Shown: positions 33,164 to 37,793 of the stretch, in pieces
Position numbering within the stretch: the stretch's first letter is position 1
Layout of the letters: each line of letters begins with the position of its first letter
Sequence record: NC_061449.1
DNA: 64,000 nt
Strand: one strand, 5' to 3'
Translations under genes and position numbers: made by a program
The notes under the pieces: generated by a model
Database searches by the model: none
The model's input: only the letters and a program-made list of their open reading frames with translations
Told to the model about the DNA's origin: nothing

Positions 33164-34212
33164 ACACAATTTCTGGATCAGTGATTGACGAAGATGTTCT
33201 GGATTGGCTTGATAACTTTAGTTCGCATGACCAGCGTAAAATCGCTGATGCGATCAACGCGATTGCGTATGCCCATCGCGCAGAGCTATCTATTCCGAAC
33301 ATGCTGCATGATGAAGACATTGCTGCACTGTCTCATTCTGACCTGTTCACTATTCTTTCGCTTGCTGCACCTAATGCGCAGTATGACTTAACGTTGTCCA
33401 ACGTTCAACTGCTCGGCCTTGCGATGAACGCAATGGGTATCATCAATTACAACATGCCTGAACTGAATAGCCCGATTATGATCGCTCGCAAGTTCGCAGA
33501 CGAGCGACGTAAAAACATACTTGGTGGTGATAGCAGTCGCGGTGATGTGATCAAAGCACTCAATCAGTGGGTTTGCGGTCTGCGCGATATTGATTTGTCC
33601 CATGCAGGTTCCGATGTAGCGCCTGACATTGCAGGTATGTACCTGTGCCTCGACGAGCATGAACAGATTCGTTACGGCCGTCTGTTCCGTAACAGCAGTG
33701 ATGGTTGGACCTTCTGTGAATCAAACGAAGACGGTGGATCTACTAACTGGTATGATCGCAGCACCGAGCACGTCAAAGAAGATGATCTGCCTATGACGTT
33801 GCTTAGTAACTGGGTGCTGGTGGCTGAGTGGTATAGCCCGAATGTTAAAGCTGCCCAGAAAGCAATTCCGCTAGGTTGTGTGAGCGACACGCATCGCATC
33901 TTTATGTTCCTGCGAAGTCTTAGCCCTCACGTAAAAGCGGAGCTGGTGGCACACTTCGATGGTGTGCTTGATTACAAAGCACCGACCTGTGTTGATACTA
34001 TCGGTCGCTTGACTGAGCATGACTGGCGTATGGCTGCTATCGCTGTTGCAGACGACGCAGAGATTCCTGCAGGTGAAACGAGCTGGTCTAATGTACCTGC
34101 GTGGTTGTGCTTCGTTGCCGTTGCTAAATCACTTGGTTTCAACTTCGAAACGCGCCAGTTCGACCCGCAGTTCGAGTATCAAGCTAACGACGATCATTTA
34201 GAAGGAGAGTAA
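33160..34212 (+). CDS. hypothetical protein, 350 aa
   Basis: Long ORF with GGAG RBS. Confidence 0.8.
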   Translation: MNTISGSVIDEDVLDWLDNFSSHDQRKIADAINAIAYAHRAELSIPNMLHDEDIAALSHSDLFTILSLAAPNAQYDLTLSNVQLLGLAMNAMGIINYNMPELNSPIMIARKFADERRKNILGGDSSRGDVIKALNQWVCGLRDIDLSHAGSDVAPDIAGMYLCLDEHEQIRYGRLFRNSSDGWTFCESNEDGGSTNWYDRSTEHVKEDDLPMTLLSNWVLVAEWYSPNVKAAQKAIPLGCVSDTHRIFMFLRSLSPHVKAELVAHFDGVLDYKAPTCVDTIGRLTEHDWRMAAIAVADDAEIPAGETSWSNVPAWLCFVAVAKSLGFNFETRQFDPQFEYQANDDHLEGE

Positions 34213-34213
34213 C

Positions 34214-34756
34214 ATGGCAAAGTCACTGGGCGTATACATGACGTATATTCTGCGTCATAAACCTCAGGACATTGGCATCGCAATGGACACCCAAGGCTGG
34301 GTGTCTGTTCTGGATTTCTTGCAGAAAGCGAAGTACAAAAAGCAAGTGACCAGAGAGATGCTGATCGAAGAAGTAGAAGCGGACGATAAAGGTCGTTTTG
34401 AGTTTAACTCGAACAAGTCCAAGATTCGTTGTGTTCAAGGTCATTCTGTCGAACACGTCATTCTCAATCTTGCACCGTGGACTGATTGTTCGTCTTTGTA
34501 TCACGGCACCGCTGAAAAGAATATTGCTTCAATCATGCACGAAGGAATCCTGAAACGCAAACGCAAGCACGTCCATATCAGCAACGATATTGAAACAGCG
34601 AAACGCGTTGGTCAACGTCACGGTGTGCCTGTTGTATTTGAGATCGACACCCAGGCAATGATTACTCACGGGTACAAGTTCTACCGAGCAGAGAACGGGG
34701 TCATCTTAACTGACCACGTACCTTCTCGCTATATTCGACTTCTGGACTCTAACTGA
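34214..34756 (+). CDS. kptA: RNA 2'-phosphotransferase (KptA/Tpt1)
   Basis: ILRH.P..IGI.MD.QGWV, DDKGRF, IRCVQGHS, LYHGT, RKHVHIS, GQRHG, NGVILTD.VP. Confidence 0.92.
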   Translation: MAKSLGVYMTYILRHKPQDIGIAMDTQGWVSVLDFLQKAKYKKQVTREMLIEEVEADDKGRFEFNSNKSKIRCVQGHSVEHVILNLAPWTDCSSLYHGTAEKNIASIMHEGILKRKRKHVHISNDIETAKRVGQRHGVPVVFEIDTQAMITHGYKFYRAENGVILTDHVPSRYIRLLDSN

Positions 34757-34763
34757 GCATATT

Positions 34764-34809
34764 TCTGGACGAAACAGCCATTCAAGACTGGCTCGATTTA
34801 TGCTATAAT
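34764..34809 (+). promoter_or_regulatory. early-type promoter P3
   Basis: CTGGACGAAACAG...TG-C-TATAAT. Confidence 0.65.
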
Positions 34810-34858
34810 AGAGATGAACGCTAGACACTCGTTTAGCTACTTACATGAGGATATGTAT

Positions 34859-36268
34859 ATGAAAAAGATTAAGCACACTTTCCGCCTGACCGACCTTGTT
34901 CGTATCTCCAACGTTCTGCCTGTGACCATGAAGCATTTTGATGGTGCAGGTGAAGAAGCAATCGTCGTTGGTCGTCAGGATGAAAAAGACGAGTACGCAC
35001 TGCACGTCAAACATCATGGTCGTGTTTCATGGTACCCCGCCGAGTGTTTGAAACTTATCAAACACGATCAGTCTGCACTTCTCGACAAGTGGGAAGCAGG
35101 TAAGTACGGTAAGAAGAAAAAGAAAGAGCGTGAGATCCCTAACGAACTGCGCAACTTCACTGCTATCCTGCCTGTGACCTGTAACGCTGATTGTGCTTTC
35201 TGCCCTGAGAAAGAAATGGAAAACAAAGCGCCGCAGAAAGAGTGGCAAGACAATCTGATGGCTGCAATCAAAACGCACGGTCATCGTGTTGATCACATCT
35301 CAATCTCTGGGGGTGAACCTACGCTTCGCATGAAGTATCTGTTCGAAACGATTGACCGTATTCGTGCAGAAGCTGGTACGCACAAAGTGGGTCTGACTTC
35401 TAACGGTCAGTTCCTTGAAAAGCATAATCAGACGATGACGTTCCTCGATCTGAATACAGACGTGATGCTGGAAAGCAAACTGTCGCATCTGAATATCAGT
35501 CTGCACTCATTTGACCGTGAGAAAGCAAACAAGATCATGGGCGTCAACTATACGTGGACTCTTGATGACCTTGTGCGCTTCCGCCGCCAGTTAGGTCGCA
35601 GGCTGAGTTTCCATATCAACTTCGTTATCAACAAACAGAACATCGACAACATCGAATGGGAGTTCCGTCAGGCGAACGAACTGATGAAAGCAAACCCGTG
35701 GATCGACGTTGTGTTCCGTGTTGACTACGACAACAAGAAGTTGAGCAAAGAACTGCGTAAGTATGGCATGGCGCATGAAGCGTGGCGCAACGCTACACGC
35801 GGCTCACAGCGTGACGTTATGGAGGCTGAGAAGAAGTTGAAGAAGAAGCCTGAGCTGATCAAGCTGTTTGATTCTATCTTTGACGGTAGCTACTACGATG
35901 AAATTTTCGACGAGACCCTGCCAGGATTCGACGATACGTTTACTACTGGTTGTCCGTCATGCTTCACGCATCGCAGCGCCGACCTCGGTAACAGCTTCGC
36001 ATATCTGAAAGCGTCTTCATACGAACCGAACGAAGACGAAGAAGAATACACCGAAATGGTATTCCACATGGACGGCAACCTGTACTTCGACTGGTCACGC
36101 AAAGAGCCTGTACCAGAAGTGAAAGCCAAGAAGGTAAAAGCGAAGAAAGTGAAGAAGGCGAAGAAAGAAGAACCTAGAGGCTATCCTGATACCTGTAACT
36201 TTGGTTCTTCTCGTTGTGGATTTACTGGCGGCAACGGGAGTTGTGGTTTCGGTAGCGGTATGTGCTAA
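34859..36268 (+). CDS. radical SAM enzyme with N-terminal accessory domain and Cys/Gly/Phe-rich C-terminal tail
   Basis: CNADCAFC (CxxxCxxC), SGGEPTL, LTSNG, LNISLHS, late CPSC; RBS in loop of TACAT-GAGGAT-ATGTA. Confidence 0.88.
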   Translation: MKKIKHTFRLTDLVRISNVLPVTMKHFDGAGEEAIVVGRQDEKDEYALHVKHHGRVSWYPAECLKLIKHDQSALLDKWEAGKYGKKKKKEREIPNELRNFTAILPVTCNADCAFCPEKEMENKAPQKEWQDNLMAAIKTHGHRVDHISISGGEPTLRMKYLFETIDRIRAEAGTHKVGLTSNGQFLEKHNQTMTFLDLNTDVMLESKLSHLNISLHSFDREKANKIMGVNYTWTLDDLVRFRRQLGRRLSFHINFVINKQNIDNIEWEFRQANELMKANPWIDVVFRVDYDNKKLSKELRKYGMAHEAWRNATRGSQRDVMEAEKKLKKKPELIKLFDSIFDGSYYDEIFDETLPGFDDTFTTGCPSCFTHRSADLGNSFAYLKASSYEPNEDEEEYTEMVFHMDGNLYFDWSRKEPVPEVKAKKVKAKKVKKAKKEEPRGYPDTCNFGSSRCGFTGGNGSCGFGSGMC

Positions 36269-36279
36269 GGAAAACTAAA

Positions 36280-36642
36280 ATGAATGAACGTCGTAACTTT
36301 TATTACCACAGCCCGTTTTATTATGGGCTTATTGTGTGGCGTAGACGTCTTGCTGTTGTCGGTGCTATGCTGATCGCTATTCTGATCATGCACGGTCGCT
36401 CCGCTCCTGCTGTCGAAGACATGTGGTTCTGGACAGGCATCATCTTCGGTGTAATTGGTGGTGTGTGCTATATACGCATGTGGTGCTATGAAAACTACCT
36501 GCTTGCTGCAATGGGCCCGCTCGATAACAGCACCGTTATTGGTTCATTGAACTTCGATAAGATCGAACGCAAACACGAAGTCTGGTACGAGAAGAAATTT
36601 GGCTGCAAGCCACCGAAGACTAACACATGGAGCAATGACTAA
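36280..36642 (+). CDS. membrane protein with 2 predicted TM segments
   Basis: Two hydrophobic stretches; AAGGA RBS. Confidence 0.7.
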   Translation: MNERRNFYYHSPFYYGLIVWRRRLAVVGAMLIAILIMHGRSAPAVEDMWFWTGIIFGVIGGVCYIRMWCYENYLLAAMGPLDNSTVIGSLNFDKIERKHEVWYEKKFGCKPPKTNTWSND

Positions 36643-37100
36643 TGCCACGCATGTTCACTGTAACCCACCGCAAGAAGCTCCACGTCCGTATGAGTGATCC
36701 TAAATTTCACGGTGCGAAGTGTGAAGCTATCTACCAACAAGGCATGAAAGCTCTGCGTCAACTTAAAATGTATCAAGACGCTATTCGTTATGCTCGTCGT
36801 CCTGGTGTGCGTTTCCGGCGTAATAGTACGTTTGCACTTATGTTGGATAATGAATGGTGGGACCATAAATCTATCGAGGAGTACCGTCGAGAAGTTCTCC
36901 ATTGGACTGCTTGCTTGAGAAAGGCTCGCGTTGCATACACCGAAGAACATTCAAAGCGCCACAATCATCCACTGCGTTTCGAAGTGAAAGATGCAGATGG
37001 TAATCGCGTTGATCTGTTCGTGACTTATGGTGCGGCCAATCACTGTAAACTACGTTCAGGGCTTGGCGCTACACTCAATCGTTATGAGGAAAAGAAATAA
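36642..37100 (+). CDS. basic hypothetical protein, 152 aa
   Basis: TAATG coupling. Confidence 0.7.
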   Translation: MPRMFTVTHRKKLHVRMSDPKFHGAKCEAIYQQGMKALRQLKMYQDAIRYARRPGVRFRRNSTFALMLDNEWWDHKSIEEYRREVLHWTACLRKARVAYTEEHSKRHNHPLRFEVKDADGNRVDLFVTYGAANHCKLRSGLGATLNRYEEKK

Positions 37101-37101
37101 A

Positions 37102-37365
37102 ATGGCTGTTGGTTTTGTGAAAGATGATGGTGTGAATGATACCATCGAAACAAACGTGATGAACGAGATTGACCGCGCTCGCTCAGAACTTCAAGGCGTA
37201 GGTTCTGATTACTGCGTCAACCAAGACTGCGGTGCGAAGATTCCTGTGATGCGCAAACTCGCTATGCCAAATGCGCGTTACTGTGTTAACTGTCAGGCAA
37301 GTCATGATGGCACTGCTAACGTCGGCTACAATCGTCGTGGCTCCAAAGATTCCCAACTGAGGTAG
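37102..37365 (+). CDS. ybiI: DksA/TraR-family C4 zinc-finger protein (YbiI-like)
   Basis: C...DCGAKIP..RK.AMP.ARYCVNCQ; C-terminus GYNRRGSKDSQLR matches remembered E. coli YbiI. Confidence 0.88.
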   Translation: MAVGFVKDDGVNDTIETNVMNEIDRARSELQGVGSDYCVNQDCGAKIPVMRKLAMPNARYCVNCQASHDGTANVGYNRRGSKDSQLR

Positions 37366-37370
37366 CAACA

Positions 37371-37793
37371 ATGGCAACACTTACCCAGACTAACAAGAAG
37401 TGGAACGTAACGTTCACCCAGAAAGATAAACCGGATAACGTGTTCACTGCTACATACACCAATGAGCAGGAGTATCTCAACTGGGTAGCACTGCATGAGC
37501 AAGGCTTCGATATCGAAGTTGAGATCGAAATGTCTTTCCTTGTGCAGAAAGGTCCGCACGACAACATACAACCTGTCGATCAGCCTGATGTGACTTATTC
37601 GCTTGAGGCGTTTATCTCGACCGCTAACGACTGGGTAGTTATTCGTAGTGGCATCGCTTCCCCAGAAGCTGTCACTCAACTTATCGATCAACTCAATATC
37701 ACGCCTGAAAACAAACACGTCAAGGGAACTAAGTTCCGTGTTGTGCGTGTTATGCGTGACGCTGTTGAAGAACTGTGGGGAGAGATGTGGTGA
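37371..37793 (+). CDS. hypothetical protein, 140 aa
   Basis: GAGG RBS. Confidence 0.75.
   Translation: MATLTQTNKKWNVTFTQKDKPDNVFTATYTNEQEYLNWVALHEQGFDIEVEIEMSFLVQKGPHDNIQPVDQPDVTYSLEAFISTANDWVVIRSGIASPEAVTQLIDQLNITPENKHVKGTKFRVVRVMRDAVEELWGEMW

Follow-up and report, generated by a model that had tools for sequence, protein, structure and literature searches.

To our knowledge, radical S-adenosylmethionine (SAM) enzymes that act on Cys-rich peptides are always encoded separately from their precursors and are nearly always bacterial. Enzymes that carry a peptide core in their own polypeptide are represented in the literature that we searched only by borosins, which comprise fused and split N-methyltransferase–core systems, the substrate of the split form being a neighboring gene (10.1101/2021.12.24.474128), and by plant burpitides, in which BURP-domain copper cyclases have fused cores (PMC12186524). 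Among radical SAM enzymes, PapB can form a link between Cys and a peptide's C-terminal residue (PMC12373016), CrpC puts thioethers on a whole protein, CrpA, and not on a short peptide (PMC13692751), and MoaA has a C-terminal tail, disordered and ending in a GG motif, that reaches into the active site, senses GTP binding and triggers radical initiation (PMC12625886). Here we analyzed gp271 (YP_010302730.1) of Erwinia phage pEa_SNUABM_17, an Alexandravirus and jumbo phage of the fire-blight bacterium with a genome of 263,916 bp. The gene occupies positions 34859–36268 on the plus strand of a 64,000-nucleotide stretch of record NC_061449.1 (hereafter the window) and is annotated in RefSeq as 'hypothetical protein'; the RefSeq coding sequence, 220859–222268, has the same start codon (record position 220859 is window position 34859), and window positions 34000–37500 match record positions 220000–223500 with 100% identity. 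While the pairing of a radical SAM enzyme with a Cys-rich target is known, what is new here is that a presumed target of this kind is tethered to a phage-borne radical SAM enzyme.

Comparison of homologs shows gp271 to belong to a phage-restricted family of predicted two-part systems, each made up of a MoaA-like radical SAM enzyme and a terminal Cys-pair module. In the reading that we favor, which we hold tentatively and with somewhat less than even confidence, the module would be the substrate of the enzyme, which would capture it at an auxiliary metal site that is incomplete on its own and cross-link it through radical chemistry.

Radical SAM domain and Cys tail of gp271

The assignment of gp271 to the radical SAM class follows from its matches to Pfam PF04055 (E = 8.6e-15; 55.7 bits versus a cut-off of 29.5) and Fer4_12 (PF13353; E = 1.4e-9), and the residues expected of the superfamily (C108, C112, C115, G151, G152 and E153) are invariant. 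The features described in an earlier note on this DNA, namely the CxxxCxxC, GGEP and late CPSC motifs, a Lys-rich linker and a 28-residue tail with three Cys-x-Phe units and a terminal Cys, were all recovered in the translation of 34859–36268 (Table 1), with the Lys-rich stretch beginning at 36116 instead of at about 36119. The Cys residues of the tail are 446, 453, 462 and 469, the last of which is the C-terminus of the protein, and the C-x-F units lie at 446–448, 453–455 and 462–464. When the region following the domain was shuffled, 0 of 2,000 shuffles reached three C-x-aromatic units; the pattern is not a product of chance.

Within the gp271 subclade, the tail is better conserved than the body of the enzyme, with 89–93% identity among tails of proteins that are 81–83% identical overall. 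One relative, its body 98.6% identical, carries eight changes in the tail, none of which falls at any Cys or aromatic position, and C446 and C462 are kept in at least 90% of the aligned sequences. By these measures of identity, the tail of the subclade is under constraint beyond its Cys residues.

A terminal Cys-pair module of variable copy number

A first homolog search returned 71 proteins, nearly all on contigs of 200–330 kb or in jumbo phages of Erwinia, Dickeya and Yersinia. A profile search of 1.84 billion representatives then gave 236 clusters (50% identity) below E = 1e-30 and 816 below 1e-10. The tails were surveyed in 185 proteins that could be anchored on the closing H-x-D-G...D-W motif of the domain, and 153 of these end in a Gly/Ser-rich tail with a terminal Cys pair, either of a Cys-x-aromatic type (53/185) or of a non-aromatic 'Cys-Gly' type (100/185). 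The remaining proteins have Cys residues that are not terminal (15/185), a single Cys (2/185) or no Cys after the domain (15/185, of which 13 end at most 15 residues past the domain).

The anatomy of the tails is consistent across these types. Two Cys residues were counted in 75 tails, four in 44, three in 21 and five in 17, with many tails carrying 4–10; the spacing between them is mainly 3–10 residues with a peak at 6, and the last Cys lies 0–2 residues from the protein end in 149 of 170 tails. In long tails the duplicated unit is a whole Cys pair. Only the Cys and the +1 and +2 positions are fixed, the ends are free, and the units are repeated in varying number (2–5 and more). The linkers that connect tail and domain are 20–140 residues long across the family and are Lys-rich or coiled-coil-like; a DNA-binding role for the Lys-rich linker was set aside, as linkers are not basic in all clades.

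The Cys-x-Phe/Tyr pattern of gp271 recurs in the tails of 53 relatives. C-termini in this clade consist of a variable, often Lys-rich linker followed by 2–5 Cys-x-Phe/Tyr units, and the aromatic residue of the last unit is commonly also the final residue of the protein. Among 137 tail Cys residues in the clade, the +2 residue is Phe in 68 cases, Tyr in 68 and Trp in 1, while the middle residue of the 137 units is Gly (49), Ser (33), Asn (20), Arg (16) or, in the remainder, another residue. In a neighbor-joining tree of the enzyme core, the nearest neighbor was also of the C-x-aromatic type for 54 of 54 C-x-aromatic enzymes, showing that, in this tree, tail type follows enzyme lineage. Across the homologs compared, Cys-x-Phe is the variant that a single clade has of a more general feature, the terminal Cys pair. 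The proposal that repeat number would vary among homologs while CxF is kept was thus borne out in part: units vary from two to five with Cys and aromatic residue retained, but Cys-x-Phe is the form of a single clade and not the defining unit.

The prominence of Gly beside the tail Cys brings up a glycyl-radical type of carrier, in which the enzyme would act as an activase and install a stable radical on the backbone of a Cys-adjacent Gly in its own tail. Gly is the commonest residue after Cys across the family (289 cases), Cys-Gly-aromatic is the commonest unit in the gp271 clade (49/137), and there is weak, sub-threshold similarity to the NrdG and PflA activases over the cluster-binding part. 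We nevertheless consider this very improbable: most C-x-aromatic units have Ser, Asn, Arg or other residues in place of Gly, a disordered tail cannot shield a radical, the PFLA, NrdG and YjjW models score 24–33 bits versus cut-offs of 126–250, and no match to the Pfam Gly_radical model appeared even at E <= 1.

Tandem Repeats Finder located an imperfect tandem repeat in the linker DNA of gp271 (36117–36167; periods 9 and 15, about three copies), which fits the rapid variation in linker length among relatives; the same analysis found no tandem repeat in the tail DNA. The linker repeat is the one point in favor of viewing the tail as functionless low-complexity sequence produced by slippage at the 3' end of the gene. 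This explanation can be given next to no weight, since the tail itself is not a DNA repeat, is conserved more highly than the rest of the protein as described above, follows a pattern that spans hundreds of 50%-identity clusters and is kept as a separate gene after fission.

Fusion and fission of the module

Eight tail-less members had readable DNA around them and were used as a test of fission; the ninth such locus (L010) was too short to judge. Beside the enzyme in six of the eight, we found a separate small gene that encodes a linker and the Cys-pair module (Table 1). The encoded partner proteins combine a segment that is helical or coiled-coil with a highly basic stretch and a terminal motif of paired Cys residues. 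A fixed module detector called the module in 5 of 8 tail-less loci compared to 2 of 31 control loci (Fisher p = 0.0017; p = 0.0002 when the L011 module, recognized by eye, is added). The controls comprised sister-clade enzymes and neighbors of fused members, the sister-clade loci having come from the hidden Markov model profile screening of loci with the family alignment before being used as controls. Tail-less forms occur at about ten separate places on the core tree, and the separate-protein form of the module accounts for about 8% of members. Because fusion and fission have been repeated, tail type co-varies with enzyme lineage and module and CxxC hairpin (below) are present jointly, the gene comparisons show the terminal Cys-pair module to be a dedicated partner of this radical SAM enzyme.

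The arrangement raises the alternative of a classical ribosomally made, post-translationally modified peptide (RiPP), in which cleavage would set the modified tail free as a diffusible toxin, signal or cofactor precursor. The Cys/Gly/Ser-rich repeats of variable copy number are core-like, the fused and split forms parallel those of the borosins (10.1101/2021.12.24.474128), and the plant burpitides supply the only other enzyme-fused cores in the literature searched (PMC12186524). Set against this, the six diverse loci compared have no conserved gene for a protease, exporter or transporter, immunity function or recognition domain in the vicinity of the enzyme, the long basic and coiled-coil parts of the partners suggest a role as whole proteins, and neither tails nor partner open reading frames (ORFs) matched any model, RiPP precursor models included. 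We regard release of a peptide as improbable. Of the enzyme–precursor fusion suggested in the earlier note, what stands is that the tail is a functional module tied to the enzyme, as indicated by copy variation, co-variation and split genes; a classical secreted RiPP is unlikely.

An invariant CxxC hairpin accompanies the module

An alignment of 57 homologs contains five invariant Cys residues, which are the three cluster ligands together with C365 and C368. The latter two form a CxxC motif (mostly C-P-x-C) that is present in 185 of 185 anchored members, mostly 33–34 residues before the closing motif. AlphaFold2 models of gp271 and of the compact 276-residue member P0159 (mean predicted local distance difference test (pLDDT) scores of 84.3 and 93.5, respectively) position the CxxC where a beta-hairpin turns, the strands of this hairpin in gp271 being predicted at residues 361–365 and 368–372 with pLDDT of about 95. 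Metal knuckles are typically found at beta-hairpin turns, and the redox CxxC of thioredoxin-type proteins at the start of a helix. CxxC hairpin, tail and partner are all missing from a sister clade of about 40 viral loci (of the 'Dulem virus 40' type). Since the motif is universal among the anchored members and the sister clade is without both, the survey shows that hairpin and tail module go together in the proteins aligned.

Foldseek matched the core of gp271 to viperins and MoaA with root mean square deviations of 3.3–3.7 Å over about 200 residues, and P0159 to MoaA over its full length (template modeling score (TM) of 0.63), followed by BlsE, viperins and the peptide-modifying SuiB, SkfB and EpeE. 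At the sequence level, alignment to solved structures covers the first half of the enzyme only, the printed profile alignments to MoaA end before the CxxC, and the C-terminal domain (residues 291–414) had no match in Pfam or PDB. It had been proposed that structure prediction might reveal whether the tail reaches the active site; AlphaFold2 leaves the tail disordered, and the models neither support nor exclude docking.

An alternative reading starts from the hairpin. The Cys pair of the tail could be a permanent ligand of an auxiliary Fe–S or other metal site together with the CxxC, or could act as a MoaA-like gate, the true substrate being a small molecule and plausibly a nucleotide. An auxiliary metal center gains weight because only two further invariant Cys residues are present in the domain, and these sit in a hairpin knuckle that co-occurs with the tail module. 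Even numbers of tail Cys residues, which predominate and for which the minimum tail has exactly two, also favor it, as does the kinship with MoaA and viperins, the closest proteins by sequence and by fold; in MoaA, a disordered tail with a terminal GG triggers radical initiation (PMC12625886). However, linkers of 20–140 residues, several pairs per tail and N-terminal modules on a separate coiled-coil protein would be odd for a fixed ligand or gate, the strict +2 aromatic residue of one clade has no clear metal-binding role, and the curated MoaA and viperin cut-offs are missed widely, with only the core aligning by sequence. A ligand or gate is, in our assessment, an unlikely explanation, but one with real substance.

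The same even Cys numbers, hairpin knuckle and MoaA/viperin kinship also favor a different alternative, in which the tail would be a swinging dithiol arm for redox chemistry or hydrogen donation, perhaps working via the CxxC and re-reduced by host thioredoxin or glutaredoxin, with net reduction of an unknown substrate. Cys pairs spaced 3–10 residues apart in flexible Gly/Ser sequence at the extreme end of a disordered arm would suit this role, and the domain offers a second, invariant Cys pair. Precedents are ribonucleotide reductases, which are reduced via C-terminal cysteines according to the passage of PMC6459318 that cites Domkin and Chabes 2014, and the disulfide shuttle of thioredoxin reductase (PMC11238311). 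The long linkers, multiple pairs, N-terminal modules on separate proteins and conserved Phe/Tyr count against this arm as they do against a ligand or gate. More specifically, the CxxC is at a beta-hairpin turn and not at a helix start as in thioredoxin-type motifs, one pair would be enough yet many tails have 4–10 Cys residues, Phe is as common as Tyr at +2 so that the aromatic residue is not a redox relay, and the unfolded free-standing partner proteins are unlike known redoxins. We judge a redox arm to be rather unlikely. A lipidation-type terminal signal and a sacrificial sulfur donor were also considered and set aside.

A tethered substrate as the favored reading

Under the favored reading of the module as substrate, its free end would enter the active site, where the invariant C-P-x-C hairpin of the folded domain would give an auxiliary metal site only two ligands and the two thiolates of the module would complete it. 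A 5'-deoxyadenosyl radical would then take hydrogen from a residue next to the bound Cys (Gly, or the x or aromatic residue), leading to a covalent change that would most simply be a Cys-to-carbon thioether ring of the sactipeptide or ranthipeptide type. A fused enzyme would modify its own tail, either in cis or between subunits. Given that no conserved protease or exporter was found, the product would be expected to remain in the infected cell as a modified protein end, without export. On this reading one can understand why the units are repeated and vary in number, why recognition residues are specific to clades, why the module is fused in some members and split off in others and occurs at either terminus, and why the enzyme resembles those that make thioethers on proteins or peptide ends. 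The substrate role, metal ligation, chemistry and biological role of the module are what we infer from homolog comparison and structural models.

Several results weigh against the module being a substrate. The proposed chemistry is drawn from sequence and predicted structure only. The tail is disordered and undocked in the models, with pLDDT of 37–41 in gp271 and 54–67 in P0159. Tail Cys residues come mostly in twos and fours with duplicated pairs, which fits metal chelation or a dithiol/disulfide couple, and the domain has only two extra invariant Cys residues beyond the SAM cluster. The nearest solved relatives by sequence, viperin and MoaA, act on nucleotides and not on peptides. No SPASM or twitch model of Pfam matches the enzyme, N_Twi_rSAM scores 25.6 bits versus a cut-off of 170, and Pfam and NCBIfam detected no domain in it resembling a RiPP recognition element (RRE), a peptide-recognition domain or a peptidase. 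Finally, no partner gene was found at two tail-less loci with available DNA (L003 and L014).

Taken to its full extent, a view that we hold a shade more guardedly still and short of even confidence, the favored reading would make this the first radical SAM enzyme family to carry its own substrate, spread over hundreds of phage lineages, the module being caught at a half-built metal site and turned into a covalently altered protein end. Were the module a substrate, the autocatalytic enzyme–core fusions known from borosins and burpitides would extend to radical chemistry, and an unrecognized post-translational step in phage infection would be indicated. A metal-completing or redox arm would represent a new way to build or feed a radical SAM active site. 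Either way, the CxxC hairpin and terminal Cys pair form a recognizable signature that can be used for annotation, and the system is a compact target for structural description.

Gene layout, neighborhood and distribution

The features of gp271 and the partner genes of tail-less loci are collected in Table 1. The N-terminal domain of gp271 (pLDDT mostly 84–95) resembles an SH3-like small barrel and has no match in Pfam; it is present only in the closest relatives from Erwinia and Yersinia phages, and relatives of 340–390 residues do not have it. The promoter attributed to gp271 in the earlier note is plausible from the upstream DNA: an extended −10 element can be read there, but it was not called by a consensus promoter scan, as the −35 element is weak, and its context is not conserved.

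Table 1 Features of gp271 (positions in the window) and partner genes at tail-less loci (positions in the respective locus)
Feature	Position	Strand	Basis or remark
Whole gene gp271, 469-residue radical SAM enzyme with linker and Cys tail, including stop codon	34859–36268	+	Translation, RefSeq
Promoter-like extended −10, TGcTATAAT	34801–34809	+	Read by eye in the 102 bp that separate the radical SAM gene from the Tpt1 gene
Shine–Dalgarno GAGGA, 7 nt 5' of the ATG at 34859	34847–34851	+	Sequence
N-terminal small beta-domain (residues about 1–80; five strands, one helix), then Lys-rich junction	34859–35098	+	AlphaFold2
Radical SAM partial-barrel core, residues about 97–290	35147–35728	+	Pfam PF04055, PF13353
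Cluster motif CxxxCxxC (CNADCAFC), residues 108–115	35180–35203	+	Translation
GGEP, residues 151–154	35309–35320	+	Translation
Family-specific C-terminal domain, residues 291–414	35729–36100	+	Invariant columns
CPSC, invariant C365-P-S-C368 at predicted beta-hairpin turn	35951–35962	+	Alignment, AlphaFold2
Closing motif H-x-D-G...D-W-x-R	36065–36100	+	Invariant columns
Disordered Lys-rich linker, residues 415–441 (Lys-rich stretch 420–441, 36116–36181)	36101–36181	+	Translation, pLDDT 56–69
Cys-pair tail, residues 442–469, YPDTCNFGSSRCGFTGGNGSCGFGSGMC	36182–36265	+	Translation; stop codon next
Partner gene	L001:7011–7316		Tail-less locus; directly downstream of enzyme
Partner gene	L011:5844–6080		9 nt downstream of enzyme; module seen by eye only
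Partner gene	L009:5991–6230		Tail-less locus; second gene downstream of enzyme
Partner gene	L042:4804–5001		Tail-less locus; directly downstream of enzyme
Partner gene	L015:1095–1325		Downstream of enzyme; Cys pair at N-terminus
Partner gene	L013:21–674		Abuts enzyme upstream; module near N-terminus

When the ORFs lying up to 7 kb from the enzyme gene were compared all-against-all by BLASTP across six diverse loci, no conserved neighbor gene emerged: only the enzyme was common to all six, with one upstream ORF shared by two of them. In the window, the gene directly upstream (34214–34756) encodes an RNA 2'-phosphotransferase of the Tpt1/KptA type (Pfam E = 7e-45), an unusual function for a phage that is not linked to the radical SAM gene at other loci. 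Downstream lie an ORF with two hydrophobic helices (36280–36642) and a DksA/TraR C4 zinc-finger gene (37027–37365; Pfam E = 1.2e-7), neither of them conserved. The Tpt1 gene, membrane ORFs and DksA/TraR gene were accordingly rejected as parts of the system, as they are not conserved around relatives of the enzyme. Where two small membrane genes had been claimed nearby, one two-helix membrane ORF does directly follow gp271, but such neighbors are not conserved near relatives. No other real ORF ending in Cys-x-aromatic was found in the window or in the first loci.

Cultured phages with a family member are limited to jumbo phages of Erwinia, Dickeya and Yersinia. A pattern scan of 185,579 representatives of cellular genomes gave no match reaching the C-terminal domain, and within these searches the family is shown to be restricted to phages. 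The sole homolog named under a bacterial species is L005, from Proteus mirabilis assembly GCA_964210295.1; its 40-kb contig, CAXOLO010000023.1, also carries phage genes for a head–tail joining protein, a dCMP deaminase and a helicase, and the homolog probably belongs to a phage or prophage rather than being a cellular gene.

The databases hold no specific name for the family. Matches in Pfam, NCBIfam, PHROGs and PADLOC were all either generic to radical SAM proteins or below threshold, with best NCBIfam scores of 38–61 bits versus cut-offs of 180–490 and a PHROGs match to 'radical SAM domain-containing protein' at E = 1e-9. A literature search found no paper on the family; subscription journals were largely outside its reach, so a prior description is possible.

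Three further contexts were seen around related enzymes. In the sister clade, to which L012:5126–7279 (Dulem virus 40, PP511379) and some 40 IMG/VR loci (L055 and L061, for example) belong, another radical SAM gene of shorter length always lies ahead of the enzyme gene, which in Dulem virus 40 is followed by a gene for a GNAT acetyltransferase; the clade looks like a different two-enzyme phage module. At L048, an ORF of 111 residues with a coiled-coil-like part and a Cys/Ser-rich C-terminus (L048:3552–3887) overlaps and precedes a distant radical SAM gene (L048:3854–4753), and the theme of an enzyme with a terminal-Cys partner may extend beyond the present family. The gene of the tail-less member P0154 (JGI 3300072015; gene table) is inside a T4-like block of head genes, in the order portal, prohead protease, 74-residue ORF, radical SAM, 74-residue ORF, two ORFs, scaffold and major capsid protein, an arrangement that suggests a possible connection with head assembly or with the internal proteins of the head.

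Comparison with known systems

Borosins and burpitides share with the gp271 family the presence of a modified segment, in our case a putative one, at the C-terminal end of the enzyme's own polypeptide and the existence of split relatives. The gp271 family differs in having a radical SAM domain in place of a methyltransferase or copper protein, in being phage-borne and in giving no indication of peptide release. As it has no SAM-dependent N-methyltransferase domain in front of its C-terminal core-like segment, only the architecture is common to it and the borosins.

The maturases of sactipeptides and ranthipeptides (SkfB, CteB and PapB) and the CrpC/CrpA pair resemble the family in combining a radical SAM enzyme with an adjacent Cys- and Gly/Ser-rich target. 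In the gp271 family, the corresponding segment is fused in 153 of 185 members and encoded by an adjacent gene in 6 of 8 tail-less loci, and the fold of P0159 resembles those of SkfB and SuiB by Foldseek. In contrast to the maturases, only the CxxC hairpin is invariant, without SPASM or a full twitch motif, and the target is usually fused; the curated maturase models score 18–25 bits versus cut-offs of 340–650.

For P0159, MoaA gives the best full-length match in fold, and for the Cys-Gly clade it is the PDB protein matched best by sequence (E = 1.3e-16). Its C-terminal auxiliary [4Fe-4S] cluster is held by three Cys residues. The gp271 family has two extra invariant Cys residues and not three, and bears Cys pairs on a linker of 20–140 residues instead of a short GG tail. 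The MoaA models TIGR02666, TIGR02668 and NF001199 give 38–61 bits versus cut-offs of 231–325 for gp271 and seven relatives, and no molybdenum-cofactor genes were found near the enzyme.

Viperins and prokaryotic viperins (pVips) rank first among PDB matches to the radical SAM core of gp271, by sequence as well as by fold, and the PADLOC pVip models match the enzyme core only (E = 1e-11 to 1e-16). Only the first 170–200 core residues align, the PDB viperin profile alignment ending at profile position 188 of 361, so that the C-terminal nucleotide-binding extension of viperins is unmatched. The viperin models NF038283 and TIGR04278 reach 30–52 bits versus 180 and 27–30 bits versus 450, respectively, and we know of no viperin with a Cys tail.

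Ribonucleotide and thioredoxin reductases, lastly, have in common with the family a flexible C-terminal arm whose extreme end bears two Cys residues separated by a few positions, a feature of the ribonucleotide reductase type that is present here on an arm predicted to be disordered. The gp271 family belongs to another enzyme class; compared to the reductases, its arms are much longer and often bear several pairs, its module is sometimes separate or N-terminal, and one of its clades has a strictly conserved aromatic residue.

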